Assembly: GCA_009103225.1 (NCBI GenBank)
Contig: RHPI01001616.1
Span: 61,444 to 125,443 of the forward strand
Source: Chlorokybus atmophyticus
Lineage: Eukaryota > Plantae > Mesostigma and Chlorokybus algae
Direction: 5' to 3'
DNA length: 64,000 nt
Each line of letters opens with the position of its first letter. Positions within the stretch are counted from its first letter, which is position 1. The notes below the pieces were generated by a model. That model had not been told where the DNA came from. It did no database searches and saw only the letters and a program-made list of their open reading frames with translations. Shown piece after piece: positions 23,717 to 61,020 of this stretch. Both the position numbers and the translations under genes were made by a program.

Positions 23717-24715
23717 TGCCGTCCTAGCCAGCAACTGCTAACCGCAGCCTTGTGGGCAGGTACTGTTCTCTGCATGCTTGCCGTATGTCTAACGGGGTGG
23801 GCTAGTAATAGCATAGCATAGCGTAGTTAGCACTAGCCCGGTGGTGACTGTTATGTGAGTGGTAAAGGTTATTTTTCATGCATGTCACTCACATTGCCCG
23901 CACACCATGCATGTTGCCATAGTACCCTTTATATACACACCACTCCCTAGTTGGTCCGCTGGACCGTCCCATGCCAGAGGCAAGCCGGGTTAGCTTGACC
24001 CAATCGGGGAAGCGCCCGGCTCCCCTATGCTACTTTGCATAGGGATGTATTGTGGTGCATGCAAATGCAATGGTTGGAGTTTGCGTGCGATAGTGATAAA
24101 GGTGCTTGACCGGGAGCACCTTGCATGCTAGTTAGTGCCCACCCCGTTAGCCTTACAGGGCAGTGCATCGCCTACGCCAGCCACACACCGCACCAGCTGC
24201 GCGACAGGCATGCGGCGACCACTGCGACACATTGCGAGTACATGGGGAGCAGAGAAGTCTGCCCGTGTGGTTATGCTAGAACACACACAGCGACATCAGC
24301 AAGGGAGTGCTGCAGCACATGCATGACATGCGTGACTGTGCATCGTGCATGCTACCGTGCAACTGACGAAACCCTGAAGTACGGCAGTGGCGACAGCGGC
24401 TGCCATTGCTGAGCAAGGTTTGGGAAGGTGGCGGTGACGGGAGGCGGAAGGGAGGAGGGCGTGGGAGTCCGCGTCGCTGTTGTTGCTGCCGTTGCCGTCC
24501 TAGCCAGCAACTGCTAACCGCAGCCCTTGTGGGCAGGTACTGTTCTCTGCATGCTTGCTGTATGTCTAACGGGGTGGGCTAGTACTAGCATAGCATAGCG
24601 TTGGTAGCACTAGCCCGGTGGTGACTGTTATGTGAGTGGTGAAGGTTATTTTTCATGCATGTCACTCACATTGCCCGCACACCATGCATGTTGCCATAGT
24701 ACCGTTTATATACAC
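23717..24715 (+). mobile_element. Non-autonomous element with ~220-bp terminal direct repeats (partial-tandem/pseudo-LTR, PLE-type)
   Basis: 23717-23938 and 24493-24715 are near-identical direct repeats. They lack TG...CA ends and carry the same 3' module as the RT-bearing PLE. No coding capacity is evident in between. Confidence 0.7.
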
Positions 24716-25904
24716 TTCTACTATGCGGACGTCCACATGCGCAGTGCTCCTTTAGTAAGGAAGGACTCACTCTATGAGACATGCACATGCAGAGGAACAG
24801 GCTCCGTTGCATACTGGCACGGTGAGAGCATCATGGTGCAGCTTGTAGCAGCTCTTGGGAGCCTCCACAACGTAGGACACCTCACATGGCAGCTCCCAAT
24901 CAGCTCCCACACCTCTCTCACAAGTACCCACTCAACACAGAGCGGGGGAAGGCCCCTTGAATTGTAACACCAAGCACCCCACACTCAATGAGTGATAGAA
25001 CCACACTAGTACTCACCTACGGCGTGCACACCAGTGCCTCTGTCATCCCCAACTTGTGAACGTCCACAATAACATTTGTATCTGCCTTAAGCTTAATGCC
25101 AACGCCCTTAAGCTTGCCCCCTAGCAATTGGGCCGTTATCTAGCTTCTTCAAGCCCTTAACAATGCCTTCCCACTTGGTCACACGCTCTCTTCAAGGGGC
25201 ACTAGCCCTTGGGAACGTGTGCTGACTATACACATGACGTTCAGCACTGAACCGTGCAGTGCTTGAACGGCGTGGCCACGTGCCACACACACGTGTGAAG
25301 CTACATTGCCGTATGCAACAGCATATACAGCACAACACTTGATATTGTCTTATAAGTGAACATACACATGTTCAAACTAACCAGCTCTGTGCTAGCTAAT
25401 CATCAATGTCATTTTTTAGTTGATCTTGTTCAGGGCTCATGAGTGCAATTGCAATTGCAATGGCTGTATGAGCGAACCCGGCAGGGCCTACTAGGTGATG
25501 TACGCACTTAAGGGGTTGAACTCTCAAGGGGTCACCCCGATGAAAGTTGAAGTTGTTAATAGCATTGTATGGGAGTTTAACTTGAACTCCCATACAACAC
25601 TGTTAACACATGATGGCAACGTGAGAGTACAATAAGCCTTGCCTCATAATGTATGCTTGATCATATTGTAATGATCTGCGGGCCACGGCTTGTAGGATGA
25701 TAAGGCCGAGAGCGGTGCCCGCACCACGCTTGTACGGCGCCTTTTGCTACTGAACTGCTTCAACTTCGGAAGTTGGAACAATTAGCTTGTTCACTCTCGC
25801 CGCCGCCGCCGCCGCCACCATTATAATAGGTGGGCTCCGACCACTAGGCCCTAAATGCTTCATGTACATGTGTGCATGATGTGCATTAGCCATGTGCTGC
25901 ACAC

Positions 25905-27426
25905 ACGAGATGCTTGACAAGGATGCGAGCTCAACCTCACCAGGATGAGGACTGCTTCCAGCTCTGGGACCTCCACCAAAGAAGCAATGTTTGTTGAGTG
26001 AATAGCGCTTGCAAGTGTGAGGGCAACAACCCTCTTGTAATGTTGGAAGAACGGCAACATTGGATGCGTGACTTTCCAACATGGCATGTCGCCATCATGG
26101 TCACACAGCTTTATTTAACCATCCCGGTCGCAGGTGCCGGATGAAGTTGTCGAGCAGTGCACAGCATGCCATGCACCCTTTACCGCGTTTACGGCGCAAG
26201 GTGAGCAGAGTCCCTCGCCTGAGATATATTAATAATGTGACAAATTATATTGCAGATTGGATTGAAGGTCACTCATAAACTGTGCACTGCCTGTTGCATC
26301 CTACAGCATCATGCCAATTGCCATTGCTGTGAAGACAAGAAAAGGGCAAGTGGAAGTCTTCGCGGACAATGGGGTCAACACTTTTGTCCGTGTATGCAAC
26401 AATTGTCAAGTGAGTTCCCATTCCGAGTGGTCCTGCTCTGTTGATTTGTTTATCTCCGCCCTCAGCACATTCGGCCTTCCACATGCTAAGGGTTCACATA
26501 ATTGCAGCATAACTGCAGCCATCACTTTTAAACATGCCTACTGGCAACACATGTATTCAGTTGCTAAATGTTGCGCGCTGGTAATTGGCACAACATCCAC
26601 CTTGCCCCTATTACTGGGTGCTGTGCCGCAGCTGCTGTTGATGCTCATTGCATTGATGCTTAAAAAACGGTACATTGCTGTGCCGCGTGAACACAACAAG
26701 TAGTGCAAGCATATTGGAATAACACGAGTAGCGGTTATTGGTTTAATGCATGCAAAGATTGCAGCTGTTGGTTGAACACTCTGCAAATCCGTGGCCACGG
26801 CCACCAGCACGCCTCCAGCTTCCAACTGCCAAAAACTTTTATTGTTTCGACATAAAGACTTGATCAAGACGCTACAGGTTGGACCATTGTTCAGCTTCCG
26901 TTTTTGTGCCAGAAGCTGCTTGTCACGTCATGTCTTTTTGAAGCATCCTGCTGTAGCAAGTATGTTGTTATGCATCTTGCCCACAACAGCGTTATGGTAG
27001 ACTGAGCAAAAGCTGCTGCAGCTTCAGTAAGTAAGCCAGACAACTTTGTGAGTATCAACAGCTGCGGAGGGCATACAAGCCAGCTAGCAGGTGTCAGTCA
27101 CACGCGCACGAACTCTGCGCCAGTGTCTCACTCTAGTCCCCACACGGCGGGTCTCCGCATATGTAGCCTTCAGTCCCTCCCATGCAGTATACACCTTCTT
27201 TCGTCCCAGCTGCGCCCCGCATGCAGGAAGTGTTGTGCCCTACGTGCCATGTCCGTCTACAGGAGTTTGGTTACCAAGATCAAACTTCGTGATCAACGTG
27301 GCAGCATGTGAACACCTTTGTTAAGTTCTGCTTTGCATTATTCAAATACAAGTGCCACCTCCTTGGCAGGATTCTATTGTAGAGTGTGGTGTGTGCCACA
27401 ATCTGTTCTTTATTGTTGCTGGGTAG
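25905..27426 (+). pseudogene. FREE1/FYVE1 pseudogene (3' half, introns retained)
   Basis: Collinear with 47.9-49.37 kb (EGNNPL..EERQHW, PDEVVEQC, RVCNNCQ, EVLCPTC, VECGVCHN). TGG>TGA at FVE*I, and the IFCDAC coding segment is deleted. Confidence 0.88.
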
Positions 27427-29235
27427 GATGCCGGGCCCCGATCCAAAACTAGCTGAACATTGACACCATCTTTCCTGCAAGCCTTCAATGCAAGCACCAA
27501 TACGCGTTGGTTGGCATAATTACAACCGCACACGTGTACATAAATGAGTGCATTAGTGTAACGATACCACTCACTTACTTGCTGGGCGGCTTGGCAAACT
27601 TATGCACAAGCACAAGGACTTACTACTGGAAGCGCTACCAGCGTCACTGGTGCAGTACCTTGCAGAGGAAGTCACAGCACCGCACCAACGAAGGAGAGGA
27701 TGACACCAACCTCTCTACTCAGCTCCCACACACTCACACACTCAAGCACACCTCACACACATGTGCAAAGCTGCCACGGACATCACACCCCACATGGGAT
27801 GAGAGGGAGAGCCCCTTGAACAACTAAACTAGGTACCCCACACACAAAAGTCTAGTATGCACATGCTGAGCGGCCTCAACACATGTTGAGGCCGTTCATA
27901 TACCCTTTCTTTGCCGCTCTCCGACCTAGAACATCCAAGTCCAAGGCTACATGCCTTGTCATGGCTGCGTTGACCACAACTCATGTCTAGGGCTGCCACA
28001 TCAGCCCTTGGACCTCTTTCAACGCCCAAGACTGATCACACATCAGCCTCGGACATTGTAAACGTCCCTAGGCTGGTCACATCAGCCTAGGACATCACAC
28101 ACATCATCCTTGGACGTTGTGAACGTCCTTGGCTGGTCACATCAGCCTAGGACATCATACTCATGCATACATATGCATCCTTATGCATGCATATGCGCGC
28201 ATATGCACACATATGCGCATGAATGCATATACATGCATACATCTAGTACATACCTCTCATGCACGCATATGCACTCGTATGTGTACATGTGCACACATAT
28301 GCAAACACATGCATACACATGCGGACATATGCACACATATGTCTCGGTACATCACATGATGTCTCATCGGCTATGATCAGCCCTGTGCTTGCCATCATGC
28401 CTTGTGTAGTTCATCATGCTCAAGGCCGCACAGGCTCTAGAGCAGACCTACATGAGAGCACACCCACAAGCACTACACACGCTTGCGTAGTGTGGGTCCC
28501 CACTTGGTCTCATCTTACTTACCACATAAGTAAGGGACAGAGAATGACTTTTGCCTGCCCTGTGGGCGTGACAATAAGTGCATGACATGACTACATGCCA
28601 CAGTGATTGCATGCTCACGTGCGTATCAAGTGGTAACGGCCTTATGCCGAGGTCGCGTGGCTGACTAGATACAACTCACAACGGCTGCTCTATTCGCACT
28701 GGCTGCACTGCACCCCCCTGCATACGCAGCATCGGTCTTACCACAACTGCATGAGACCTGATACATGGGCCACGCCGCCATTGCAGGCTACCATTTGCAC
28801 AGCTCTGCAAGCATCCCCACCCTCCACCCCGCCTAGCCTGCGCTTGCTGCTGCTGCTACGCTTAGTCCATAAGCAAGTTGCCTTTCCCTACCTGCCAAGC
28901 CTTCTTTTAAGGTAAGTTACCAGTACCGCCTGTTGCACAGGTCCTTGCCCCTTTGTGCCCCACCCCTTGCCTGCCTGCCTGGTTGCTGCCTTACCTCCGC
29001 CCCATTGCATAGCACTTAGCTACCACACATAGTTAGTGGCATGCCCCCTTGTCATTGATGAGCCCTGCATGTGCACTGAGACTGTGACCGTGTGCATGTT
29101 GTGTGTGCATGTGTGTGCCACTTGCCTTGCTATCAGAAAGCCTTTACAAGTAGTAGTAACCGTGCCACACATGCATGCATCATCAAATGTTTGTACATTC
29201 ATTATCAGCATAGCGCGCTACACAGCCCGTTTGGG

Positions 29236-29420
29236 CAGGTAATGACGAACGTGTGCATGTACATGCATGTCTTAAGGGAAGGGCTAGAAGGTGTAGCTTA
29301 GTGCCGTAGATTAGCCCGGTGGTGACAACGGTGAGATGTATATCAGAGTGCAAGCGATGCTTGAGTAATGTGCATATGTATATAGAGCTATCACATATGT
29401 GCATATAGCATGCGTGTGCA
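29236..29420 (+). mobile_element. Solo PLE 3' module
   Basis: CAGGTA (29236) ... cttaagggaagggctag ... TAGCCCGGTGGTG (29312); right boundary approximate. Confidence 0.55.
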
Positions 29421-29610
29421 CAGAAGCACACAATATCATGTACACATTCATGTACATACATATATACAACCCAATATACACATATATGGTAGTGTAATGA
29501 AAGGGGCCACAAAGCACAGACATAGACACAGGCAAGGTAGCATAGTACATATGTAGATAGCGCTATCACTACCACCCACCACACACACTATATACCACGA
29601 TTCCACACCA

Positions 29611-31375
29611 AGATCTGTTGAATCGAATGACCGAGCTGGTGGAGGCGAGCTTCGACTACAAGCGGAGACAAGACAGGACCACGCACCTCCACCTCACAGT
29701 CCAACCGGACGGCACAGTACTGCATAGGCGGACAGCTGCAGCAACATACCGCGTGGATGATGATCGCATGTGGAGGACGTTCACGCCGCCGACGCTGTAC
29801 ACGATGCTGCAGTTCCTGTTGAACAATCTGTACCTGCACATTGCTAGTGACGAACTATACAGACAAACAGTAGGAATACCTATGGCAACAATGCCGGCGC
29901 ACATCTAGCCAATGGCTACTTGCTGTCGCACGAGAGACGGTTCGCACGCGGTTTGCGTGACATCATGTCACGCAAACCGCACATGTCTCCTATGATAGGA
30001 GACATGTCCCTGCTGACGGCCTGTGCAAGAGGAGTGCGCTACATAGACAACCTGTTTGTGGCGGACATGCCGGATTTTGCAGCGGAGCTGTACATGGGAA
30101 GTGACGTACCAGGGGGAGGCCTGTACCCAAGGCATGCACTCACAGTGACATGTACAGCTGCGGGCACATCGGTGCCATTTCTGGACTTGATGGTTTTCCA
30201 AACAGCGGACGGAATCTGCACCAAGTTGTACAGCAAGCAAGATTTGCCGGAGTACAACGACATCAGACGACATAGGGCGCCGCTACCGGAGTCCAATGCG
30301 CCTCGGAGTGTCAAGTTGGGAGTGGTGGAATCGCGGTACGTGCGGTTCATCCGCGTGTGCACGTATCGCACTCATTTCATCAACGCTATCACAGACATGC
30401 TCACAGCGATGCAGTCGGAGGGCCACTCTTTGAAACGGATGTTGGCGACGCTGCGGCAGCGCATGATGCGCAACAACACGTATGCGTACTGCAACCCCCC
30501 GGCATTGTTGTACAAGATGGTGTACCTCGCTTTGCAGAAACACCGGCGCGCAAAGGCGACCATCGCAAACACCACGTCAGCGGGACCAGACAACGAAGGC
30601 TGCTTGGTAACGCAGCCTGCCCGTGCAACGAACACAGCCGTCCAACCCCACCACCCAACCCCACCAGCACCACCTAACTGCCAGCGCTACACAGTGCAGT
30701 GCCCTAGTGCCACAGTGCAGCACTGCATGCCAGCCTGCAGAACGAGAGGCAGGGCAGAGGGGCGGGGCAGAGGGGCCTTGCCAGATCAGCGGCGACAAGG
30801 GTTTGCAGTCGAGGCGACGGCACAATGACAGCACGAGGAGGAGGGGGAGGCGGAGGAGAGAGAACAGGCGGAGCGGGGGACGAAGAAGTAGGGAAGCAGG
30901 GGGAGGGACAGACGGAGAGGGAGAGAGGGAGGGAGACTGTGGAAAAGGGGGGGAGAGGGAGTGTGCTGCATGCTGCCTGCTGCTGTTACGCTGCACCTGG
31001 ACTACCGTGGTTGACGCTGCTGCTCGTGTGTTGCACAGGTAATTAACCAACAATACGCATGTATGCATGCCTAACGGGGAGGTCTAGAGTAGGGTAGTGT
31101 GGTAGGTAAACAGGCAGTCAATATAGCCCGGTGGTGGTGTATGTGACTGTGTTTGCATGCTGGTTGGTATGCTATGCTGTTGTGACGTCATGCATGTCGC
31201 CAATTGTCTCGCGCATATCCTGTACACAATCACCCGCATCCACCATGCACATCTCACTGGCCATGCCGCACAGCACAGTGGTGGTGATGACGTGAATGTT
31301 GTGAATGCTGCTTGGTGCTATGCATGTGTTGTGCATGGCAAAATCCTCCATCGCATTTTTATATTTTAATACAGT
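29611..31375 (+). mobile_element. 5'-truncated Penelope-like retroelement (RT core, thumb, 3' UTR); inactivated
   Basis: LYTMLQFLLNNLYL...YRQTVGIPM, then a 1-nt frameshift into NNAGAHLANGYL...RYIDN...VPFLDL...TKLYSK...GVVESRYVRFIRVC. The GIPMG, YIDD-like, FLDL and thumb motifs are typical of PLE RTs. No C-terminal endonuclease is seen. Flanked by CACACCA at 29604-29610 and 31376-31382. Confidence 0.85.
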
Positions 31376-32090: not shown

Positions 32091-35000
32091 TCACAAGCTG
32101 CGCACAAGAGCCCTAAACTCGTCTTTACACTGCACAAATGATGCATACCGCTTCGCCAGGTCGTCGCGCTCAGCCGTAAGCGCTTCCACAGCCGGTCCCG
32201 TCGAGTACATGTCCATGAAGTGCTCGTCGCTGCAAGCGAAAAGCTTCATCGCGACCGCTGAGTGCATGCGCGTGCGGCTGAGGAGCAGATGAGAAGCTTG
32301 TCAGTACACAGATTATACAAAATGCTGAGGTTCTTGACTGCAGACAAGTTCAAACTGTGTACAGCATGCACATATTGTGCACTAACCATTGCTCAAGGAA
32401 GCCTGCTTTGAGTGTGGCTGGCACTGCCCTCTGCACTACTGCCTCGCGGATCCTTGCAAACTGTTGCCCAGCACTATTGCACACCTGAAAGGAACAACAA
32501 CACGGCAACACGGTGTTAGCGAGACCTTTGTCGCATGTGGCAGGTTGCAACTATGCCATGCGGGCATATGCACCTCATGGTATCGCCCATGCTTTGCTGC
32601 CTTGTGGGGAATGTTGCGAGCGGTTAGATTAGAGTCCTTCATAGGCGATGGGATTCCCCTGTTGGCAGTCACATACTCTCTCCTGCGGCACATTATGCCG
32701 TTATGGCAAACATGTGCAAAAGTTCTCACTGGTGAAGGCACTGAAAAGTTGTAAGGGAGGCAAACAGCAACTACACAACACCGACAGCACTCAACCCAGT
32801 GTGGGGAGTGAGGCGATGCAACTATCACCTGCGAGCAATTGCGCTGTCCTGGTCGGCTTCTGGAGATGGAGTCTCAGGTACAGTCAGCTGACTTTCTCGC
32901 AGAGGCTGCCGCGGTGCTGCTGGACTTTGAGCAAGCCTGGAGCTGGCATGCATACCAATTGTAAGCGCAACACAACCTTGATGCATCAACTATGTTGTAC
33001 CGTTCCCGCTTATGCACTGCCTGCTATACTCACAAAAGCTTGATGCCATGGATGGCATGCATTCGTACTTGTGTTGTGCAGGGACGTCGTTTTCAAGGTC
33101 CTCCTGGTCGAGGGCTTGCCAGCCAGCCGAGTGTGCTGAGAATGGAGCAAACTCTTCATACGTGGGAGCAAAAGCGCTCGTGGCGGTGTCCAGATGATGG
33201 TGGGCCATGTCCTTGCATTGCGCAGCCAGCTCGGATACAAACTTTTCATAGGCACGCCTGAGCTCGGCCTTGAAAGCAATGGATAGCCCCAGTGCCGCCC
33301 CCTGCTCCTTGAGTAACATCCAACATGTTGATGTCTGGCACACGCAAGCACGCGCATGCGCGAGCACGCAGTCTGACAAGCACACGCACGCACGCTGAAT
33401 GTACCAGACTGCCGCCCTTCATAGCATACCCATACCTGAAATCTTTGCAACGCCAGGTCAAAGAGGCGACTGAGAATGTACGCGAGGCGATCGCAGGCAG
33501 TGCTGAGCATGGGTGCCAGCCAAGCACGCGCCGTTGACCTGGCAATCTCAGCACCAACGCCGGCTATACTGGACCCTCTGCCTGATTGCGCAAGGAGTAC
33601 GTTTGCAACCTGGCAGTATGCAGTGTTAATGAAGCATACATAACAAGCTACTTACACAGCTTATAGAGGACCTATGTTCTCGGAACAAACGTTGAGTCAA
33701 TATGGGTGCCGTATGCAAGCAATTGCTACCTTCTCTCTGGACAGAGATGGGAACTCCATTGAGCATGCAGCAACATGAAACTCCGCAATCAAGCGCTCAA
33801 ACGCAGCACCCCCATACAACCGCAGCTTTGCATTCGGCGGCCGCACAGCTGCCACAAAGCAGTAGTTAGAGGCAATGGCCATGACAATTAAACCAACAAA
33901 ACACCTTACATTACTTGAACATGGACACAGTTTCAAACTGGAAGACAAAGTGCTTTGCGATAGTGTACCTGTAGAGGTGCCAGGCCACTGTGCAGCTCCA
34001 CTCACTGCCCGTTCTTCATCCGTGCTTTGGCCATATTCACTTGGATCCGGGTCAGTTGCTCCATCCAACAGTGCGATGATGTGATGTGTCAAAGTTGTCG
34101 CATACTCCATGGCACTACGCCTGACTGATGCAACATCGCCGGCTGCGAGGAGTCGAGCTTCTAGTGAGGCCAGCTGGTCTCTGAGGCTCGCGCAGCGCTC
34201 TTCAAGTTTGGACAATGTTGCGGGTGCGGCCTCGCGATACCGCCGCTGCAACTCGGACTCCAGAAACGACTTGAGCGCGTGGAATCCAACACGCCCTTCA
34301 TACTTCTCCTCATCGAACCCACCCTCTATGTCTTGGCGCAGATGTCTCAGCACCTGTAATTGCACAAACTCCCTTCATGGTGCAAAGTAGTTTGACAACT
34401 GGTACTGATTATTGGCGTATTCAATGCTGTGGAATAGTGGTGAGATTGGGCGACGCAGGCTCAAGCAGCGACAATTGAGAGCGTTTACCTCATCATCCAC
34501 TGCAACAAGTTGCCGTCGAAACTCATCATTAGACGAGATGGTTTTGTCTTTGGGCAAAGCCACAAAGAAAGGTTTTGCGTTGTCTCCAAGGTAGCCGCTG
34601 GCGCTGAGGTACTTGTCAACCTCCCATCGAGCTGAAAACTCTTTGAGACGGTTGTCAAACTTAGATGCAACAACCACTGTCCGCTTAAAGCCCGGGTCAA
34701 TTTCCTGGCACACGCACGCAGCCACTTGTCACTACTTGCAGCAACAGTCAGACAACTGCATTGTTCATGCAGTGCAAACATGCAATGTGGTGACGTTGGA
34801 AGCTTCGCACAACAACAATACTTGCATGAAGATGGTTACCTGTACAACATGCAGCCATAGTGAAGAGCACCACTCCACTGATGACTGCTGCAGGAACAAG
34901 ATCAGCCGGTGCTGAGGGGCTGCCAGCTGTTTCACCATCTTCATAATGGCGTCGGGTGTGTCTTCGGCCTCCCCCTGCCTAGCCTTCAAGATGAAGCCGG

Positions 35001-35775
35001 GGGTATCAATGATAGTGAGGTTCGGGCTGTAGGCATACTCTGCCCGCATCACAATCGGCTTTGAGGACACTGCTGAGCCAACAATACGCAAATGCGCCTC
35101 CGTGCGCTCCTTGATGGCATCTGCTATGGCCGTAACGGGCTGTATAACAGGCCCATAATCCTCTGAGTCTTCATTCTGTAGGCGACACCGCGGATGGATG
35201 GCTGTTTCATCATGCGCCATCTGAAGTATAAGCGGCCGCCTTGTACCCATCTCGACCTCTCGCACATTGAATCTGAATGCAAGTGTGCTTATTGATAGAA
35301 GCTTAGACAACAAGATTGTTCAGGAAGGCAAGGAAGCTTCTACATGCAGCTCGGCTCTGTGCGTACGTGTGGGTGTGTACATGTGTGCATGTGTGCGCGA
35401 TGCACGATGATGACGATAATGATTGGGATGATGAGAAGATGAAGCGCTACCCCCTGACGAGCCTACCTGAAACCAAGCAACGCTTCAAGCAAGCTGGACT
35501 TGCCGTCGCTCTGGCCGCCAATGGCCACAATCTCAGGCATCTCAATGCCTTCCCCGAGCGCAACTGCTGAGGCCTGCACCCAGAGAGAAGAGCGCACACA
35601 CAAACTCAGCATAATCAACCTGCCGGTGCAGCAACAGGCGGAAACCCACAACACTGCTTGCTCTTCGTGCCTGCAGCCTCGCAAAAGCCTGGTACCGCCT
35701 GCAAGCAGCCTCATCGTCCGTCGCCAATGCACCCGAGGCAGCACCCGTCATCCCAAAGCCTCCGCCCCTGTCCAT
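32091..35775 (-). CDS. DRP5A: Dynamin-related protein 5A
   Basis: MDRGGGFG...RRYQAFARLQ | ASAVALGEGIEMPEIVAIGGQSDGKSSLLEALLGFR | FNVREVEMGTRRPLILQM...NLTIIDTPGFILK...LQQSSVEWCSSLWL | ...SKFDNRLKEF... | ...LYGGAAFER... | ...DEHFMDMYS...EFRALVRSL*. Confidence 0.95.
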
Positions 35776-36337
35776 GACCACAGCCACACCCACACCGCCG
35801 CCGCCAACACCGCCGCCGCTACTACGGGCTTTAGGGTTTGAATAAAAGGCGCGAAAACCACACAACGGGCACCTGTGCCTGTTCCACCGATTCTATGTTT
35901 TTGCTCCAGATCTTAAAGCTCGTCCAGTACGTCGCGGTGTCACGTTGGACTGGCCCTGCCGAAATCTCTGCCATGAGTCAGCCTGATGCGGCGCGGCATG
36001 CAGGCGACTTTGGTTTAGTGGGCGGCGGGGTAAACCAGGAGGTGGTGCTTAGCCTTGGCAGTGTGGTTTGGGTTGGTGGCGTTATTGCAGAGTTGGCATG
36101 TCGGTGGTCTAAGTGATTCACGTGGGATTTTGTTTGACTGTGGCTATTCTACGAGTTGCCAGTTTGCAAGGAGCGAGCAGCATGCTCTGTTAGGGTTTGT
36201 TCTGTTGGTGGTTGGTGATTGTGCAAACTGGCGTGCACAAAACTGGTGTGCACAGCTGAAGCTGTGAATGCGGTTGTGATGGTTTGGTAGTCGACAGCTG
36301 TTCTGGCTGCTGTTGGTCGGCAATTGCTGTGTTAATC

Positions 36338-38253: not shown

Positions 38254-39478
38254 CGCTGTGGGCACAGCTGTTCTAGAGGAGTTGAACTGGCCAGCACCAT
38301 CACAGGAAGCAGCCTGTGTGCAGTGTGCGTGCGTGCTCTGTTTTGCAGAATTGCAATGTGAGGCGGATACGTTGTAGTCCTTGTTGTCGCTCTGTGAATG
38401 TTGTGAATAGTACTTGTGAAGTTGCAACGAGCGATGTTGTGCTCAAGCCTGTTCAATGACTGTGCGCTGCCAACATTGTTGTTTGGTAACTCGTTGCTTC
38501 TTCAAGGGCGTTTGCAGCAGGTCTCCCTTGTAGTTGTACATACATGTGGTGTATGAAGGCATGCAAGAAGTGTGTGCAGGCAGTCCGCCGGTGCTGTAAA
38601 ATTTGTTACAATCTTGCGGTGTTCTTAGAGGAAGTTGAGACATCAGCGTTGCTCAAGTGCTCATGCGCCTGGCTGGCAGGTGACTAAGCTTGCCATGCAT
38701 GCCTGATTAACAGGGGCGCAGTAGTGGTAAAGCTAGGTGTAGCGAGTAGCCAGCAGGCAAGCGTGTGGCTTAGCGCAGTGGTCAAGTCGGTGAGTTGCCA
38801 TTGTCGTTGGCTGTTGGCATGCTCATGCCGATTCTGGTATGTTTGCACAGGCAAAGACAGTTGCATGTGTTCCATCTACTCTGGAATTTTGTACATGTCC
38901 ATGCCACAAGGCAGCCTCCTCAACTTGGATAGTAACTGGGCAACAAGGTCGTCTCATGGAACCAGCACCTGTTGGTAGTTGCTCGTTGACCATAAATTTG
39001 TCGGTGTCATGGTTGCTGCTGGCTGTGTATTATTTAAAGATAATGCGCAACAGTATGGTACATGCATGGCCCCTGCTATTTTCAACAGCCATCAGTTGTA
39101 ACTCTATGTGGCAAGCAGTCCGCAACATGCAGAGTGACATAGCGCACGCAATTCACACCATTGTAAGGTTGACCATCGGGTTCACTCACTAGCTAACACT
39201 ACACTATCTCTACTACTGTGCTCAAGATGCTTGCTGCATGCACAACACGTGGGCAGTTGCACTCCGCGTTTCGGTACACTGTGAGTGCGGCTTACCTGGA
39301 ACAATAGTGGATGAAGCAAATTGGACAACACAGAGCTTGAAGACACATTGAATGGGAACTATCCGTTGGAACTATCGATGGTAATCTTACAACAACGAAC
39401 GTACAAGCATCAGCAGGCAAATCTCTTAACGCACTGGCTTGCTATTCGGCTGCCAGAGGAGCTGAACCATGCTCACTC

Positions 39479-49367: not shown

Positions 49368-49787
49368 GTTTTGGCCCCTGGCCTAGCAACCAGCTCTTAC
49401 AACCAGTATGACCACCGTATCAAGCATCCGGATGTGTGATTGGGTGGATGCGTGAGGCAGCATGCATCAGCTCAACAGCTTGGTTTGGTGCGCCTTCTCT
49501 CTGCATGTTGCCATTATCAATGTGACGCAAGCAGTAAGGTGTGGCATGAGTGGGGCTAGTGCGTGCGCTGCTTATGCTAGGAACTGTGAGTTTGCCTACC
49601 ATGGTTTTGTTGCAGCTTGTCAGTAAGATATGAGTCAGCCATTGTCCGTGCTATTACAATGTCACACATCAGCGAACAATGCGGATGCATCTGCACACCC
49701 AAACCAATCATGTATGATGGAACACCTCCAACAACTACTACTTAGCTGTTGACATGCGCATGCTGCTGCTGCATTTGCCATACACTA

Positions 49788-49914
49788 GAGTAGTGATGAA
49801 GTAAGTAGTAGGTAGTGTGCACCTAGCCCGGTGGTCGAGATAGAGGTGAGTGTGGTTAAGGTTAAGTGTCTATGCATGTGTCGTGCATGTTGCATACATC
49901 ACGTGCATATTTTG
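49788..49914 (+). mobile_element. 127-bp PLE 3'-end insertion with 7-bp TSD TACACTA
   Basis: TACACTA at 49781-87 and 49915-21. The paired arm has the empty site (tagtgta, 51387-93). Contains TAGCCCGGTGG at 49824. Confidence 0.85.
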
Positions 49915-50596
49915 TACACTACTGCATGTAGCCGTGCACACACATTCAGCTCCACACTACATTGACTTACGCCAGGCTATGTGCCTACTCTAACTTCACT
50001 ACCCAAAGCATTATGCCCAACATCATTAAACCAGTTGCTCTCTGGCCGCAAGATTTTGATCTGCAAAAGCGGGTCAATCAAGAGAGTTAGTTCTCAACGT
50101 CATGAAATCCCCAACCATGCACCTGCAAACCTCCAAACACACGACATTGCACAAAATGGCTGAGATTGATTGAGACAAAATGCAGTGTAACAGCAGCAGC
50201 ACGCGTGCAAGGGCTGAACAATGCTCAAGTAGTGGTTGAGATTGCGACAAAGTGCTTATGTGATGGCTAAGCTTGCTGCGACGGCGTGCTCCATGTAACA
50301 CAACGGAATAAGTACAGGCCGTTCTGTGAGAATGAGGACAGACGGTTACAAAATTTTGTGAGAATGAGTACAGGCCGTTCTGTTAAGAAGATGTTAGTCA
50401 GCGCCGAGAGTTATACAAGCTATGTAAGATCGGTCAATATTTTGTGCTTCAAGTGTTTTTTTGGTTTGGTAAGTATTTGGAATCACGGTGTCATTGTCGC
50501 TGAGGAGGGTGTGAGCGGCAGCGTGGTTGTGAGCATGGGCGTGGTCAGACGGTGGTTGCAATAGTGCGAGGGCGTTGGGGCACATACACACACGCC

Positions 50597-51293
50597 ATGG
50601 CTATCAAGCAGCGCCGCATTGGCGTCCTTGCTGGCAGTCTTCAGGGCGCCACGATCCGTCGCTACCTTCGAGAGGCGCAGCCTCAGCGAGCGTGCTGAGG
50701 AGACAACGGATAGCCACTAGGCGGACTTGCCCCCGCCATCGGCTTGGCTAAAAAGGCCGCCGCGGCTAATGCCAAGGACACTGCCGCCGACAACAAGGAC
50801 AAGAAGTCCCAGATCGGCCCCAAGCGCGGCTGAAGGTGAGCGGGCGTCGGGGGCCATTACTGCGGCGCGGTCAACCAGTCTAATTCTTGACGTGCAGTGT
50901 TCGGTTCATTCGCGTGAATGAACTGTTGTGTTGCAGGAAGTACCTTCATCTCAATCAGTTTCAGCCATTATGAGCACTGCTGAGCCAATTGCATGCGTGG
51001 TCCCGTTGTGTTACAAGAAGCACGCCGTCACGAGCAGTCTCAGCCATTATATGAGCACTTCATTGCAGCACAGCCATTACTTGAGCAATGTTCAGCCCTT
51101 GCACGCGTGCTGCTGCTGTTATAGTGATTTTGGCTCAGGCAGTCTTAGCCCTTTTGTGCAATGTCGTGTGTTTGGAGGTTTGCAGGTGCATAATTGGGGG
51201 TTTCATGACGTTGAGAATGAACTCTCTTGATTGACCCGCTTTTGCAGATCAAAATCTTGCGGCCAGAGAGCAACTGGTTTAATGATGTTGGGC
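50597..51293 (+). pseudogene. psaE pseudogene (5' region, exon 1, intron, part of exon 2)
   Basis: Nucleotide match to psaE exon 1 with frameshifts and a stop, then IKILRPESNWFNDVG; exon 3 absent. The exon-2 piece is also present inverted at ~50020-50065. Confidence 0.88.
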
Positions 51294-51502
51294 ATAATGC
51301 TTTGGGTAGTGAAGTTAGAGTAGGCACATAGCCTGGCGTAAGTCAATGTAGTGTGGAGCTGAATGTGTGTGCATGGCTACATGCAGTAGTGTATGGCAAT
51401 GCAGCAGCAGCATGTGCATGTCAACAGCTAAGTCGTAGTTGTTGGAGGTGTTCCATCATACATGATTAGTTTGGGTGCAGATGCATCCGCATTTGTAACA
51501 AA

Positions 51503-52054
51503 TGTAACAGCACCACCGTCGCCGGTGATGCCCCTTCAATCCTCTACCCCAACACCCACACCGCCTATGACAAGCCTTTCAACGGCGTGGCCGCCACTGA
51601 GCAGAGAACTGAAAATCCCCACATCAGTTTGATGTGACCTTTTATATCAAGAGTATATCAACTGTATACCTCTCGATAATAAACTCACAACTAGACATCG
51701 ACCCTACAGATAGGGTAGTTAGAAATTCAAGCGTGAGCCAATCACAGCTCAGATAAGGTACCTATCGAAAGAAACCTATATTAAGGTACTCAACAAGATA
51801 GTGATCACATTTTATCGAATGTGACACCGTGTGACGAAATAGTGACCAAATAGTGACTAAATAGTGACTAAATAGGCTTGAATAAGCGGTTCTACACCCA
51901 TTGGGACTTATTTAAGCTATGATAAAGCATCATAGCCTTTGATAAGCGAGGAACCGTAGAAAAGAGGTATAAATAAGCATATTTGGATACTTATTCATAC
52001 AAAATGTGTTGTTTAGGTAACAATAGTACCCCTATTATTATTGCTCCCGTTACA
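51503..52054 (-). repeat. 3' LTR (~552 bp) of the Gypsy element
   Basis: Starts TGTAAC right after the PPT and ends GTTACA (6-bp terminal inverted repeat). Confidence 0.85.
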
Positions 52055-55000
52055 TTCCCCCCAACTTAAGTTTTCAACGTTTTCGTTGAACTCAAGATGA
52101 TCAGGCTTGATTTTGAGTGATTGTAACCAGTGAGATAGCAGGAAATGACAGGGTGGTAACGAAACTGCAATGCCATTCTGTCATAAAATCAAGCCCACAC
52201 TTTATGGGACAGGACGTGAATCCCAATAAGCTCGAAGCAACTCGCGGCAGTGCGTAAGATGCCTGTCGGGCTCTCAACTGTTATGTTCTGGGCCATACCC
52301 TTTCTATTTCACCAAATAGCGAGTTGCGCGTCCTCGACTATTTGGCTTATGGTTTAATATAGCTTCCACCTCGTATTCGAGCTCGCTGTCTACCTCAACT
52401 GGCGGTGGTGGAGGCTGTGTTCTACCGTCTAAGCGGTAAGGTTTCAACAAGTTCACATGGAACACGTTGTGTATACGCACACTTGGGGGCAATTGCAGTT
52501 GATAAGCGTGCGTACCAACTTTATCAGAGATAGAGAAAGGACCTAACCATCGGGGCAGCAACTTGCGAGCACCCGTACCTTTGATGGTTATGATTTTTGC
52601 GTTAAGCAAAACTTCTTCGCCGACATCGAAAGTGGCCATTCTTCGATGTGTATCTGCATAAGCTTTTTGCCTGTCCTGTGCTCTTGACAGGCATAGCATG
52701 GCTCGAGCCAAATTTCTTGCATATCAGTGGCAAATTCCTTTGCCGCTGGTACAGTCAGGGCATTGCGAGGTACACGCAATGACACTGGTGTGTTCGGGCA
52801 AATCTCATAATTCAAGAATGAAAAATGGGGTTTCATCTACACTTTCCTGCCACGCGTTGTTCACAGCGAACTCTGCCATTGGAAAGTACCTGTCCTAATC
52901 AGCATGGTTAGAAGCCACATAGTGGCGAAGCATTTCTTCAAGTATTTGATTCGCTCGCTTAGTTTGTCCGTCCGTTTGCGGGTGGAAAGCAGAAGACATG
53001 CTTTGTTTTTACTTCCAACGATTCACAGACTTCTCTCTAAACTTGGAGACAAACCGAGGATCACGATCTGTGATAAGCTCACGCGATACACCGTAGACAC
53101 AAATAAATGTGCCAAGTCCCGTGCACTCACAGTTGTGCAACACGGGGCAAAATGCACTTTTTTGGTCAAACGGTCGACAAAAACCACATTAACATTGTAT
53201 TTGGCTGCTGTTTCAGGTAGGTCAGTAATTAAATCCATACTGACACTATCCCACTTTTGTTCTACATTTACCAATGGTTTAAGCAATCCCGTTTGTTTTT
53301 GTCGTAGTGGCTTATTATGTTGACACACGTCACATGTGCGAACATATTGATCCACATCAGCTGACATTGACGGCCACCAGCAGAAATGTTGCGCAGATTT
53401 GAGAGTTTTATGTTTCCCCTAATGCCCAGCATACGGCGGGTCATGCACTAAATGTAAGCATTGCTTACGCAAGTCGCCCGAGTTGGGAATTGCCAACTGC
53501 TCCCCTTTATACCACAGATTGCTAACAGCAGTAAGCTGTTGCAAGTTGGTTTGACTGCTAAACCAATCATCTGAGTTATACCCTGTGGACACTTTTTTCA
53601 GGAAAGGATCTTCAGGCTGTTGCACATTACGCGTACTTCGAGAGCGCGTAAGTGCCAAAAGAGCAGGGCTACGACTTGGTGGATCCGCCACATTGGTGCG
53701 ACCTGGACGGTATTGCCAAGTGAAAGTGAAACGAGAGTTGAATTCATTCCACCTAGCTTGCCGCCTCGACAGGTTCTGTTGCGTATGAAAGAATGTGAGC
53801 GGGTTGTGTGATCAGTAATCACTAAAAACTGCACACCTTCCAAGTAGCAACGCCATGTGCGAAGCGCGTGCACCACCCCAAGCAATGCCTGCTCAGTGGT
53901 TGTGTGATTATGTTCAGCAGGAATGAACTTTTTGCTTTCACATGCACATGGTCTGTCATCCTGTAGAAGGACTGCCCCACACCCAATGGTGGAAGCATCA
54001 CTGGTCACCACAAAAGGCTTGGTGTGGTCGGGGAAGGCTAACACAGGGGCTTGTGTTGATGCATCTTTAATGAGTGTAAAGCAACCTCGTGTGCCTCCGT
54101 CCACACAAATTTAACATCTTTTCTTAGTAAAGATGTTAAGGGATTTGCCATGCTAGAATATGCTCGTATGAACTTGCGGAAATAATTGGCTAGCTTCAAG
54201 AAAGCACGTAACTGATGTACATCCTTTGGTGGTGGCCAATCCTTCACCGCACACACCTTTTGAGAATCTGGTTTCAATCCTTCTTTGCCAATCACATGCC
54301 CTAAAAAGGGTAGTTCATCCTTTGCAAAGTTGCATTTGGACAGGTTGGCACAGAATTTGTGTTCACGTAACTTAGCTAGAACCAATTCCACATGCTTGTA
54401 GTGTTCCTCCCGGGTTTTGCTGAACACAATAATGTCGTCAAGATATACCAGTACAAACTTGTACAATTCATCAGCAAATATTGCGTTCATTGCTGCCTGG
54501 AATGTAGCTGGTGCATTTGTCATTGGGTTAACCCAAATGGTAACACTCTATACTCAAAGTGTCCTAGTGGGGTGAAAAATGCAATTTTTTGTATATCCGA
54601 CGGGTGGATTTTGATTTGATGATAACCACTGGTCAAATCCAGTGTGCTGAACACTGTTGCACCTGACAGCTTATTAAACAAATCATCAGTCTGAGGCAAA
54701 GGGTATCTGCTTTTCACAGTTACCTTGTTCAACGCACCGTAATCAATACACATGCGTAGCTTGCCATTCTTTTTGGGCACAAACAAAATTGGTGCACCAA
54801 AAGGAGATATGCTCTTTGTTATTAAACCTTTGTCCAATAACTCTTGGAGCTGTTTTTCCATTTCCGCGTGTTCAAAGGGACTTAGCCTATAAATAGGCCG
54901 CCAAGGTGGCTTTGCCCCCTCTTCCAACGGAATGGTATGATGTATGTTTCTATCAGGAGGCAACTCCGGGAGTTCATCCTGAAATACATCTGCGTATTGT

Positions 55001-55683
55001 TTCGTAAGTGATTGCACCACAGGGTCAGTTACGGCCTGTTCAATAGGTGTCTCTACCTGTCGTAAGTGCATTAAATATACTTCCTCACGTTTGCGCATGC
55101 AACGTTTCAGTTGCATAGCAGAGAGGAGCGGAACATTGTCGCGAGCAACACGTGCGAGTACAGGTGCGGTTAACGTCACCTTACGTTGACCCTTACGAAG
55201 GGTGCACGTATTTGCTCGAGAGTCCAATTGCAAACCTGTTTCGGTGTGCCACTGTTCACCCAAAACAACATCCACCCCGGGGACACCTATATCCACCACG
55301 ATGAAAGTTGGTCGAGTCTTGTGGCTGTTAATTAAAAAACGCCCCTTCACCTCCCCAAGTGCAGAAAGGGTGGAACCAGCAGCACGTACATACGACGTGA
55401 CTGGTGTGAAAGGTATGTTATTACGTTTCACCCAAGCATGTTCTACAAAGTTATGGTTTGCACCAGTATCAATCAATGCTGTACATGGTGTACCCATAAG
55501 TTGACTCTCAAATCTCCATTTGAGTGGCACTGAGTGACCATTGAATGTAGCTAATGTCGGAGGGCCGTGATTGGTAGCAGGCTTGACAAAGATCACTTGC
55601 AACGGTGAAGCTCCTGTATCTTTGCGTGAGAGTTGCATAATTACTTCTCCCCCTTTCAGCAATCGCGACCACAGAGAGACCAC
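51503..55683 (-). mobile_element. Ty3/Gypsy chromovirus-type LTR retrotransposon; decayed, lacking gag and the 5' LTR
   Basis: Protease ALIDTGA, RT ([18 protein letters not shown]), RNase H (VTSDAS), integrase (HDPPYAGH, CDVC, SMDLITDLP), chromodomain EYEVEAILNHK...YLVK. Multiple frameshifts and stops. PPT aagttggggggaa precedes the LTR. Confidence 0.95.
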
Positions 55684-55684
55684 A

Positions 55685-56380
55685 CAGAGAAGGCGCACCA
55701 AACCAAGCTGTTGAGCTGATGCATGCTGCTGCCTCACGCATCCAACCAATCACACATCGGGATGCTTAATACGTTGGTCATACTGGTTGTAAGAGCTGGT
55801 TGCTAGGCCAGGGACCAAAACCTACCCAGCGGCAGCAAAGAACGGATTGTGGCATACGCCACACTCTACAGTGGAGTCCTGCCCAGGAGGTGGCACTTGT
55901 ACCTGAGCCATGCACAGTAGACATTGTATACGCAAGGATGCTGGCAAATCACTAACATAAATACGATCTCAGCCACACACCTGTAGACGGACATGGCACG
56001 TAGGGCACAACACTTCTTGCATGCGGGGCGCAGCTGGGACTGGAGTAGGTGTATACTGCATGGGAGGGACTGAAGGCCACAGATGCGGAGGCCCATGATA
56101 TATGTGGGGACTGGAGTGAGACATTGGCGCAGAGTTTGTGCGCGTGTAATTGGCAGCTGCCGGCTGGCTGCTATGCCCTTCGAAGCCGCTGACACTCACA
56201 GAGTTGTCTGTCTTACTCCTCGAAGCAGCAGCATTTCGCTCATAATCATCCTATACGGGCCATGTTGCGGGCATAATTGACAGCAACACAACCCTACAGC
56301 AGGTGCTACGAATGCTCAACAAGCCCCTGCTGGCACAATGAGAAACGCTGAACATCAGTCCCACCTGTAGCTTCTTTACC
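55685..56380 (-). pseudogene. Inverted, nearly identical copy of the FREE1 3' exons and 3' flank
   Basis: Reverse complement of 48811-49500 with scattered substitutions; translates SVSGFEGHSSQPAAANYTR...MQEVLCPTCHVRLQ. Confidence 0.9.
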
Positions 56381-57900: not shown

Positions 57901-58074
57901 NNNNNNNNNNNNNNNNNNNNNNNNNNNNNNNNNNNNNNNNNNNNNNNNNNNNNNNNNNNNNNNNNNNNNNNNNNNNNNNNNNNNNNNNNNNNNNNNNNNN
58001 NNNNNNNNNNNNNNNNNNNNNNNNNNNNNNNNNNNNNNNNNNNNNNNNNNNNNNNNNNNNNNNNNNNNNNNNNN
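57901..58074. other. Assembly gap (N-run) preceded by a C-run
   Basis: Direct reading. Confidence 0.99.
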
Positions 58075-58149
58075 CGCCCGCGCTCTTCGTGTGGTGACGA
58101 CTACAAACCTCTGACATTGGTTGCTGCAGACTGCACGGCCAAATGAGGT

Positions 58150-61020
58150 AAGCCTTCTGAACAATGGGACGGTGAGATTGACAAAGCCTTAAACAAGCTA
58201 GGCTTCTCTGTCTGGCGTGCTGGCCAGAGAGAAGCCGTGCTGGCCGGGTTGCAAAAGGTCAACAGAATGATCAGATGGCCTACTGGCAGCGGTGCGTGCA
58301 TTGCATGCTTAGTGCTCTTCTCTTGATGATTGCCATGCACTCAGCTGTCAAGCTTCTCTCACATGTTCATGTCGGATGCTTGCGTCACAGGAAAGAGTGT
58401 GTGCTACCAGATTCCTGGCATGCTGCTGCCTGGATTGACTATTGTTGTCGTTCCCTTAAACGTCTTGAAGTGGGAGCAAGTGAGCATAGCAGTAATCAAT
58501 CCACATGCAGCCCTTTGCTCTGTTATGTATGCACTCAAGCCAAGATGGCTGCAGGCAGCTTCCTTGCGCAGGCGTTTGGGTGAGCAAAGCTGCCTTATTC
58601 TTGACAAGGTTGACGCACACAACCAACAAGAACAGGAACAGCGCTTGTTTGCGTTTGCACAGTTCGGACATTGCAACCAAGTTTGTTTTTATGACCCCTG
58701 AGAAAGTAAGAAACCGAGTATCTGTGCTGCTCCCCCCAGCCAGCTTCGAGCGAGTCTTAAGGGCATGGCTTGAATGTTGTTCAGATGGTTTGTTCACCAG
58801 CAGTCTCATGTCTGCTGCGCGATCTTTACGCACAAAACCAAATGGCAGGGGTAAGTTGCTATCATGAGTGATTGGCACACATGCAATCATTTCAAGGCCA
58901 ACACACACTAACCATTAATTGAGTACTCTGCATCTGTTCCATACTTCATCTCTGTGCGTTTAAATGGTGTTTGATAAATGTCACAATCTGCTGGATTTCG
59001 ACCAGCTGTTTCGCAAAGGCTACGCGATGAACACGCACTGCAGAATGCATTGCAAGCAATGATACTGCAGCAATCAAGTCGGTATGTTACCAGGACAATG
59101 TATGCAGCAAGCTGCGGAGTTTCTGTGAAAGAGCATTTGCCAGACGTTGCCAAGACGGTGATGACGGCTGTCATCTCAGACCAGGACATGGACAAAGTGT
59201 CTTGGGAGTTGAATGGATTTGTCAACCCCCAGCCATGGCATAGGTTTCTCCAACCCTTGCGTCGACCCAACATACGTATCGAGGTACTCATCACCTGTCG
59301 GTTGATGTGGTGGTCATGCGCATTGCTTGACGTTGTGTCCTCCACGCATGCACGCGCACACACAGGCAGCTGCATATTACTGTGTGTATACATGCACGCG
59401 CGTGCAACTGTATGATAGGGCGCGCGTGCACGAACCCACGCACGCACTCGCGTGCTCACACATACAGACGTGTTCGCGTGCGGGTGTGCATGCGTGCGGG
59501 TGTACAAAAGATGCAAGCTGCATCACGCGCATGCACAGCACACAGCATGCATAGCAAACACCCACATACTCACTCAGCACACCGCATTTATGTTTTCACT
59601 TCACACCACCGGGCTATCTACTCTCCTACGTACTTACTACTATTACCCCGTTAGACCACATGCAGTGCATGCATGGCAAATGACAATCACAGTTTTTACC
59701 TGCACGCATGTGCAGCTAGTTAGTCTTGCACGGTGTTGCAGTCAGCCAGCAGGACGAACAGCAGACGGACTGACTGACTCCCCCCGCCACTCTCCCTCTC
59801 CGTCGCTCTCCTGCCTCCCACAGCCACAGCCTCACTCCGGCTGCTGCCTGCCACTTGTGTTTCTCAAACCCTCGCGCAGGGACCCTCTGCCCTGCCCCTT
59901 CGGCAGCAGTGGTACTGGCGAGTCGCTGCGCAGTGTAGTTGGTAGTGTCAATGCTGCTGGTTAGGTGCTGCTGGTGGGGTTGGGTGGTGGGGTTAGATCC
60001 TTGTGCTCTTCGCACGTGCTCCCCGTGCAGTCGTTGCGGTTGTGCTGCACGGGCTGTACGTTGATGCCGCACCGCCACAAAGACCAGCTTGTACAGCAAT
60101 GGTGCTGGAGTGCAGTAAACGTAGTTGTTGTCACGCAACATCTTTTGTCTCAACGTGGCCAGCAACCTCTTGATGGGCTGTGCAGCCGACTACTGCCGTG
60201 CGTGTGTCTCTGTATCTGTGTGTGCGGTACATGCCCTTGTAACATCTCAACACACTGATGAGGCTGCTAACTTCACTGCCCATGGCACGCAGTGTTGGCG
60301 TAAGCAGTGCAAAAAAACTCAGTGAAGGACTGTCAAGCGCTTGTGGACTACATTCACAATGAGTATCCAAACCAAAGCGTCAATACCTACACGCTCACTG
60401 TCAAAAACTGCTATGTTGTTCAAAAAAACTTCAAGGTACGAGGAGTTTGTGTTCAACTTCTTCCTCCTCATTTTGCTTAAGCACGTGTGTGGAACACGTA
60501 TCCTAATAAGTCCTATGTTTAGAGCTGCGGGTTGGACTCCGTTGAGGTGTTTCATTCAAGTGACGGTTAGCGAGCGTTGAGCAAACCCTTTTTTTTTTTT
60601 TTTTTTTTTTTTTTNTTTTTTTTTTTTCGAAACAGGTGAGCATTGATGCCACTCACATGCTCGCTCTCTTGACAGTTACTTGAATTGAAGGCGTTGATAA
60701 GGCCGATGTCCGGCTAGTCGTCTTCTACTCCATACCTTTGGACCTGGTTCGCTGGACCGAGGTACGTGTCCATGATGTTTTCAATCAGGTGCGTGCAATC
60801 TGTGTGTCTGTGGCTGTGGCTGTGCGCATGCACATGCTCGTGGGTGTATGTGCATTTGTCATCGTCATCAACATCGTTACTGCTGTTGTTGTTGTTGTCG
60901 TGATAATGCTGCTGGGCAGGGCATTGGCAGAGCCGGCCGGGATGGTAAGCCTGCAACAGCCATCACTCTTTACAGCTTTGGTGACAAGAATGCAGCTGAG
61001 GGGTTGCTGTTGAGAAGGTA
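58150..61020 (+). pseudogene. RecQ-like SF2 helicase; degenerate, probably a pseudogene
   Basis: GFSVWRAGQREAV...WPTGSG | KSVCYQIPGMLLPGLTIVVVPLNVLKWEQ; KFVFMTPEK; VFDKCH...FRKGY (motif II E>K); VMTAV...LRRPNIRIE; DYIHNEYPNQSV..YTLT; GVDKADVRLVV; GIGRAGRDGKP. Apparent frameshift near 58640-60, TAA at 58961 and TGA at 60681. Confidence 0.8.
59500..60195 (-). mobile_element. Short 5'-truncated PLE copy inside a RecQ-like intron
   Basis: KRLLATLRQKMLRDNNYVYCTPAPLLYKLVFVAVR matches KRMLATLRQRMMRNNTYAYCNPPALLYKMVYLALQ of the 29.6-kb element. Purine-rich 3' UTR and the CAGGTA/CTAACGGGG/TAGCCCGGTGG module follow. Confidence 0.82.

Follow-up and report, generated by a model that had tools for sequence, protein, structure and literature searches.

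A conserved two-box 3' tail shared by copies of a Chlamys-type Penelope-like element family in Chlorokybus atmophyticus

Organization of the conserved tail

To our knowledge, no class of retrotransposons is less well understood than the Penelope-like elements (PLEs), and neither the choice of template by their reverse transcriptase (RT) nor their keeping of introns is explained. Here we describe copies of one PLE family in a stretch of 64,000 nucleotides (nt) of Chlorokybus atmophyticus (contig RHPI01001616.1 of assembly GCA_009103225.1, positions 61,444 to 125,443 of the forward strand). This whole stretch is called the window, and all coordinates are counted from its first letter. The 11-mer TAGCCCGGTGG has six exact matches in the window, against 0.69 expected, and none of 100 shuffles reached six. 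This motif is the core of a conserved 3' tail, which also serves as pseudo-long terminal repeat (pseudo-LTR), of a PLE family of the Naiad/Chlamys (endonuclease-first) type. The tail is common to RT-coding copies, a 777-nt noncoding unit and very short 5'-truncated copies. The evidence base is seven copies from this one window of 64 kb (c1 to c7, Table 1).

Read from 5' to 3', the tail has a donor-like block, CAGGTR, followed by box 1 (CTAACGGGG) and a UAG-rich, C-poor spacer. It continues with box 2 (TAGCCCGGTGGTG), 6 to 9 nt, a second donor-like block (GTGAGT), about 75 to 100 nt and a terminal TGTACAC. The blocks themselves are invariant, while the sequence between them cannot be aligned across lineages. 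The compound pattern of CAGGTA, 65 to 85 nt and then the 11-mer was matched five times (0.00 expected), with distances between the two starts of 77, 77, 76, 88 and 86 nt. Box 1 follows the donor-like block by 32 to 48 nt as measured (30 to 48 nt in the general layout of the tail) and precedes TAGCCCGGTGG by 38 to 53 nt. The donor-like CAGGTR was present in all six copies long enough to contain that position. Box 1 had six matches in the window, against 0.16 expected: four belong to modules, a fifth sits in inverted orientation within the body of the noncoding unit (23939-24492), and the last, at 63846 (-), is unrelated and lies outside any module. In the copy at 29312, box 1 is replaced by the variant CTTAAGGGA.

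The spacer between the two boxes measures 29 to 54 nt and carries four to six TAG triplets per copy. In total, 22 TAG were observed and 1.4 expected, a 16-fold enrichment, and at least four TAG were found in only 0.2% of 36-nt windows. This enrichment is maintained across all lineages despite their differing sequences. The fourth block, GTGAG followed by T or A, or else GTGACT, lies 19 to 22 nt downstream of the first base of the motif in five of the six lineages and 43 nt downstream of it in the sixth. All copies end in TGTACA(C) or TATACAC, 97 to 134 nt past box 2.

A preliminary description of this DNA, made from the letters alone, had listed six positions of the 11-mer, CAGGTA 76 to 88 nt upstream in five copies, an internal box, and divergent sequence between the blocks. 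Our searches reproduced the six positions exactly and found CAGGTA at the same coordinates. The internal box is CTAACGGGG in four modules and CTTAAGGGA at 29312, and the lineages indeed cannot be aligned between the blocks. An nhmmer profile of the tails added a diverged seventh copy (c7) with an E value of 0.007, which became 3e-21 once c7 itself had been added to the model. By eye, its blocks follow in the order CAGGTG, TTAACAGGGG, a 54-nt TAG-rich spacer, TAGCGCAGTGGTCA, GTGAGT and TTTTGTACA.

The assembly has gaps at 44405-44545 and 57901-58074 and a single N at 60615. They fall between the dispersed copies, and none lies inside a copy or within 400 nt of one, so continuity across the gaps is irrelevant here. 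The N at 60615 is surrounded by a long A-rich run (60590-60640), 400 nt upstream of c6.

Table 1. Positions of the tail copies, their conserved blocks and the reference genes in the window
Feature	Position	Strand	Description
c1	23717..23938	+	222-nt 5'-truncated tail with full module; pseudo-LTR ahead of the next unit; ends TATACAC
c1, donor-like block CAGGTA	23757..23762	+	
c1, box 1 CTAACGGGG	23789..23797	+	Branch-point-like
c1, spacer	23798..23833	+	TAG-rich, C-poor
c1, box 2 TAGCCCGGTGGTGA	23834..23847	+	11-mer plus three more conserved bases
c1, second donor-like block GTGAGT	23855..23860	+	
c2	23939..24715	+	777-nt noncoding unit: 554-nt body and 223-nt tail (24493-24715)
c3	29213..29445	+	Tail only; box 1 variant CTTAAGGGA
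c4	29585..31227	+	5'-truncated RT-coding copy; module 31036-31147; 3' end TGTACAC
c5	49788..49919	+	127-nt insertion, 5'-truncated inside the spacer, plus duplicated target
Empty site matching the c5 insertion	51387..51393		
c6	59500..60180	-	5'-truncated; last ~45 codons of the RT open reading frame plus tail
c7	38677..38895	+	Diverged seventh copy, found by nhmmer profile of the tails
TAGCCCGGTGG sites	23834, 24611, 29312, 31124, 49824	+	
TAGCCCGGTGG site	59606-59616	-	
CAGGTA sites	23757, 24534, 29236, 31036	+	
CAGGTA site	59702	-	
CAGGTG site	38677	+	Same block in c7
DUF2046 coiled-coil gene	36300-37600	+	Short introns, local reference
Dynamin-like GTPase gene	33600-35520	-	Short introns, local reference

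Family assignment

The RT remnant of c4 (29585-30828) consists of two pieces of an open reading frame (ORF), 29618-29908 and 29920-30828, with a frameshift near 29908. An exhaustive protein search with its 302-amino-acid ORF returned 131 relatives. In the long ones, the match to this ORF is the extreme C terminus, and four relatives (P0019, P0050, P0111 and P0021) carry an N-terminal GIY-YIG domain. The alignment of the relatives runs in the order GIY..YVGQT, PCxC, DKA, the RT motifs (GIPMGT, RYIDDL and PFLDL) and the thumb. When the two ORF pieces of c4 were compared by hhalign with an alignment of PLEs carrying an N-terminal endonuclease, the matches scored 99.6% (E value of 1e-23) and 97.3%, and the former extends into the final ~30 alignment columns of the full-length relatives. 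The ORF ends that precede the copies at 31124 and 59616 (-) are related to each other (BLASTP E value of 2e-16) and both are RT C termini, in keeping with the earlier statement that two copies follow related RT-thumb ORFs. The Penelope-like assignment given in the preliminary description is thus supported by the hhalign matches and the relatives with an N-terminal GIY-YIG domain, and can be refined to the Naiad/Chlamys type. Its proposal of a cis-module shared by autonomous and nonautonomous members also holds, since the tail occurs in RT-coding copies and in the noncoding 777-nt unit.

Other searches were less informative. Pfam, run on ten ORFs around the copies, gave no match for the RT remnant, a word-based protein search with the 302-amino-acid ORF gave no match, and a sequence search of PDB with a full-length relative returned nothing useful. 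No hammerhead, tRNA-like structure or other Rfam family was found in the whole window at the gathering score, or in 23600-24800 and 29100-31300 at E values below 5. Of the GIY-YIG domain and hammerhead ribozyme that the preliminary description had proposed to look for in a full-length element, the former was found in relatives, while no hammerhead and no full-length copy were found in the window.

A second and different PLE RT remnant was identified by tblastn at 12514-12930 (+). Its tail extends as far as about 13560, where it borders on a poly-C tract (13565-13612). Just past the stop codon, this tail carries CAG/GTAAGT and CAG/GTGAGT (the slash marks the potential splice site), and further on a well-formed intron-like segment of 51 nt (13120-13170) with CTAACGG, TACTAAC, 13 AG-free nt and CAG. 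Tracts of (C)n are a target type listed for Chlamys elements in the account of Craig et al. 2021 (PMC8557442), which can be compared with this poly-C tract.

Mobility and the 3' end of the element

The tail c1 and the tail of c2 (24493-24715) are 97% identical direct repeats that flank the 554-nt body. A truncated tail followed by the 777-nt unit is the partial-tandem "pseudo-LTR" layout of PLEs. The body showed no similarity to 145 PLE proteins in a tblastn search, and the unit is therefore nonautonomous. With the same 145 proteins, the sequence upstream of c3 showed no RT similarity either. Within the body of c2, at 24137-24150 (-), lies an exact inverted 14-mer of box 1 and its flank (CTAACGGGGTGGGC); a weak box-2-like CCCGGT comes next. 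Inverted truncated copies are frequent beside the pseudo-LTRs of PLEs, and the 14-mer may be the relic of such a copy; it could also pair with box 1 in the RNA. Directly past c4, at 31271-31352 (+), a weak tail-like match (nhmmer E value of 8e-4) with CAGTGGTGGTGA and the end TTTTTATAT may represent a further 5'-truncated tandem fragment.

The clearest record of mobility comes from c5, which sits in one arm (49678-50306) of an inverted repeat with 91 to 95% identity. At 51387-51393, the other arm (51003-51493) is shorter by exactly 127 nt, and the c5 insert has TACACTA on both of its sides. The 49824 locus is thus a filled site with its empty counterpart. Since the insert begins inside the TAG-rich spacer, c5 is a 5'-truncated retro-copy, and it fixes the 3' end of the element. 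The element itself ends in TACAC, which makes the true target duplication ambiguous, at 2 to 7 bp, and the insertion suggests priming on a short match between the target and the RNA end. The presence of c5 in only one arm of the palindrome implies that it is younger than the palindrome. The inverted repeats are nested, an outer pair (48811-49503/55683-56380) being 96% identical and enclosing the pair that holds c5, and parts of them resemble 25907-27427.

Like c5, c4 and c6 are 5'-truncated. The targets contain TACAC and have CA-rich flanks, but they are not clean microsatellites. Taken together, the copies behave as retro-copies, made by target-primed reverse transcription that set out from the 3' end, as indicated by the empty and filled sites, the 5' truncation, the partial tandem at 23717-24715 and the common 3' end.

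Proposed function of the tail

We lean, with some reserve, towards a role of the motif, as 3'-tail core of Chlamys-type PLEs, as a cis-signal in the template RNA that is recognized by the RT or a partner. According to this proposal, the two boxes with the UAG-rich tract would form the cis-signal in the element RNA. Through the boxes, the RT of the element or a partner protein might pick out and position its own template. The donor-like blocks may belong to an intron in the 5' untranslated region (5'-UTR) carried by the pseudo-LTR, of the Penelope or Chlamys-3 kind, but the TAG of box 2 is probably not the acceptor. The proposal is consistent with the invariance of the blocks amid sequence that cannot be aligned, with the persistence of the TAG enrichment in spacers of differing sequence, and with the observation that the noncoding unit shares only the tail. 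A recognition signal would also explain why noncoding members retain the tail, as short interspersed elements (SINEs) keep the tail of their long interspersed element (LINE).

Several observations weigh against this proposal. The window holds no full-length element, and the endonuclease and CxC motif of the family are known via relatives only. Recognition does not account for the conservation of two good 5' splice sites, CAGGT and GTGAGT. By eye, box 1 (CUAACGGG) and box 2 (CCCGGUGG) pair at seven of eight positions, but RNAalifold yielded only a 4-bp CGGG/CCCG pairing and two outer pairs, and the pairing of the two boxes appeared in the predicted ensemble of one of six copies. In c1, c2 and c3, box 2 is predicted to pair instead with GGGCUAG, just past box 1. 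The folds of the module were no more stable than those of shuffles (z from -0.5 to +1.4). No covariation is available, since the boxes are invariant, and the two substitutions in c7 are uncompensated. Seven copies from one 64-kb window are too few to judge structure either way.

A short invariant motif of two boxes, with its UAG-rich spacer, offers a concrete handle for experiments on binding, splicing and mobilization, and a simple annotation tag for the tails of this Chlamys-type family. The feature is nevertheless well defined but ordinary, being the conserved tail of an element type already known, and the chance that it represents a new RNA signal of PLEs is modest.

Splicing and other alternative explanations

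Nine introns from the two host genes in Table 1 provided a local reference for judging whether the module is spliced. Two conserved donor-like blocks, an early AG and the precedents of Penelope and Chlamys-3_cRei make splicing through sites other than those first proposed possible, though on balance fairly improbable. It could run from CAG/GTR to the first AG past the branch point, giving a mini-intron of 42 to 60 nt, or from the GTGAGT donor into the body. The two donor-like blocks are conserved and keep a fixed spacing, and an AG is read 10 to 13 nt past the branch A in every copy. An intron from GTGAGT that crosses the pseudo-LTR into the body would parallel that of Chlamys-3_cRei, with the boxes and the UAG tract exonic or regulatory, and a plausible acceptor, TTACAG, lies at about 24164 in the c1-c2 body. 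The 51-nt intron-like segment at 13120-13170, in the tail of the different PLE remnant, also speaks for this reading. However, the shortest of the nine host introns measures 73 nt, only one unit allows a check of the body acceptor, and the proposed sites are candidates read from the DNA sequence.

The preliminary description had instead read the module as a retained spliceosomal intron of the pseudo-LTR, with a CAG/GTA donor, a CTAAC branch point and a TAG/CCCGG acceptor, giving the junction CAG/CCCGGTGG. Its 5' half fits this reading. The donor-like CAG/GTR, found in all six copies that reach it, resembles the host donors (AG/GTA or AG/GTG), and as a branch site CTAAC is ideal. Taken as an intron, the module would measure 76 to 94 nt, inside the host range of 73 to 283 nt (four of the nine at 73 to 96 nt). 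CAG/GT stands 43 nt from the start of the c1 pseudo-LTR, and 5'-UTR introns are on record for Penelope (75 bp, PMC2377424) and, in the account of Craig et al. 2021, for Chlamys-3_cRei (PMC8557442). The 3' half is unlike that of the host introns. All nine of these end in CAG, whereas the module ends in TAG in all copies. The AG-free stretch before the acceptor covers 13 to 58 nt in host introns and 2 to 10 nt in the module, and the last 40 nt contain zero to three and five to seven AG, respectively. The caveat already raised about extra AGs is thereby borne out, with five to seven of them between CTAAC and the proposed TAG. The 3' half is also purine-rich: the pyrimidine fraction of the last 20 nt is 0.25 to 0.50, compared with 0.40 to 0.65 in the host. 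The AG found 10 to 13 nt past the branch A would be met first, the strongest conservation lies in the 10 nt beyond the proposed acceptor, and the segment is present in every copy. Since the TAG-rich spacer is the opposite of the expected AG-free zone, and since conservation continues past the acceptor, an intron running from CAG/GTA through CTAAC to TAG is unlikely as stated. Given this downstream half, a signal needed for copying the element is more likely.

Equally doubtful is that the module mimics splice signals, with a 5' splice site, a branch box, UAG repeats that block acceptors and a second 5' splice site. If so, it would engage U1, SF1 or U2, or proteins like heterogeneous nuclear ribonucleoproteins without being removed, and would either mark the template RNA for the RT or keep the RNA unspliced. 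This would give a mechanistic reason for the "intron retention" long noted in PLEs, and would amount to a new cis-RNA signal in hammerhead-less PLEs.

A shade less probable is a signal at the DNA level, namely, an internal promoter or start-site region of the pseudo-LTR, carried by the tail so that tandem copies are transcribed. The pseudo-LTRs of Penelope and Chlamys-3_cRei hold a start site and an internal promoter, the module lies within the part that becomes the pseudo-LTR (c1), and the RNA structure discussed above is unsupported. Conversely, no promoter motif was identified, although no promoter scan was made, and the strand specificity, splice-like blocks and richness in UAG would be more usual in an RNA signal.

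The A box of RNA polymerase III, as the head of a tRNA-derived SINE, had been offered as another alternative, because box 2 is one mismatch away from TRGCNNAGTGG; the variant of c7, TAGCGCAGTGG, even fits exactly. This identity is effectively refuted and the alternative rejected: the best B-box matches have three to five mismatches in nine positions, no better than shuffles, no tRNA was found by ARAGORN and no Rfam match even at E values below 5, and the motif lies in a 3' tail downstream of the RT ORF rather than in a 5' head.

Other features of the window

Three further features lie outside the PLE copies. An ORF of 409 amino acids at 54520-55749 (-) encodes an aspartyl protease together with the initial part of an RT (Pfam RVT_1, E value of 5e-12); it is of the Ty3/gypsy type and unrelated to the PLE copies. 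An ORF at 10619-11389 (+) carries a peroxidase domain (Pfam E value of 3.5e-12), and a (CT)n/(CGCT)n microsatellite occupies the end of the window (63940-64000, -).

Comparison with known systems

Searches for the motif elsewhere returned little. A metagenome scan for box 1, 20 to 50 nt and box 2 gave one match, in a bacterial repeat-protein gene, which we attribute to chance. Viral contigs scanned with the PLE protein alignment gave none, and a literature search for the 11-mer TAGCCCGGTGG gave no relevant occurrence.

The closest known elements are the Chlamys PLEs of the green lineage, described by Craig et al. 2021 as carrying an N-terminal GIY-YIG domain, with families curated from Chlorokybus atmophyticus itself (PMC8557442). 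In that account, Chlamys elements have pseudo-LTRs, 5' truncation, (CA)n or (C)n targets and no canonical hammerheads (PMC8557442). The copies in the window resemble them in an RT C terminus homologous to proteins with GIY-YIG, CxC, DK and RT parts, and in an ORF that stops right after the RT thumb. They also share the partial-tandem pseudo-LTR and frequent 5' truncation. Their flanks are CA-rich without being clean microsatellites, and no canonical hammerhead was found in the window at the gathering score or, in the two segments scanned, at E values below 5. Unlike the described elements, they include no full-length copy in the window, and the endonuclease, the CxC motif and the absence of CCHH were not observed directly. 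The main text of Craig et al. 2021 does not describe a conserved tail motif of two boxes and a UAG-rich spacer (PMC8557442).

The donor-like blocks recall two known introns. In the Penelope element of Drosophila virilis, an intron of 75 bp lies within the pseudo-LTR, 46 bp downstream of the transcription start, and its sites are conserved among diverged elements (PMC2377424). Chlamys-3_cRei has a 398-bp 5'-UTR intron starting in the pseudo-LTR, as reported by Craig et al. 2021 (PMC8557442). As in both, a donor-like site lies tens of nt into the pseudo-LTR here, and the signals are conserved between diverged elements; the size (76 to 94 nt) is similar to that of the Penelope intron. Splicing of those two introns was shown by reverse transcription PCR or Iso-Seq, whereas the sites in the window are predicted from the DNA sequence. 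Unlike those introns, the module has a 3' half that violates the host pattern of an AG-free stretch ending in CAG.

LINEs and their SINE partners share 3' tails, and LINE tails have defined stem-loops. As in those tails and in the retrozymes derived from PLEs (bioRxiv 10.64898/2026.07.22.740005), noncoding members of the family described here keep the tail, presumably for recognition in trans. The retrozymes carry hammerheads and LINE tails carry stem-loops, whereas no hammerhead was found in the window copies and no stem-loop is supported for them.

The role proposed for the boxes can also be compared with a biochemically studied PLE of Anolis (PAc), which requires a specific RNA segment for insertion in vitro and starts reverse transcription at defined internal sites (PMC11167929). 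PAc belongs to a clade that differs in having a C-terminal endonuclease and hammerheads, and its required segment falls within the initial 172 nt of the ORF and downstream of its pseudo-LTR, unlike the module described here. By analogy, however, the two boxes may serve in the Chlamys-type tail as this required RNA segment serves the RT of PAc.

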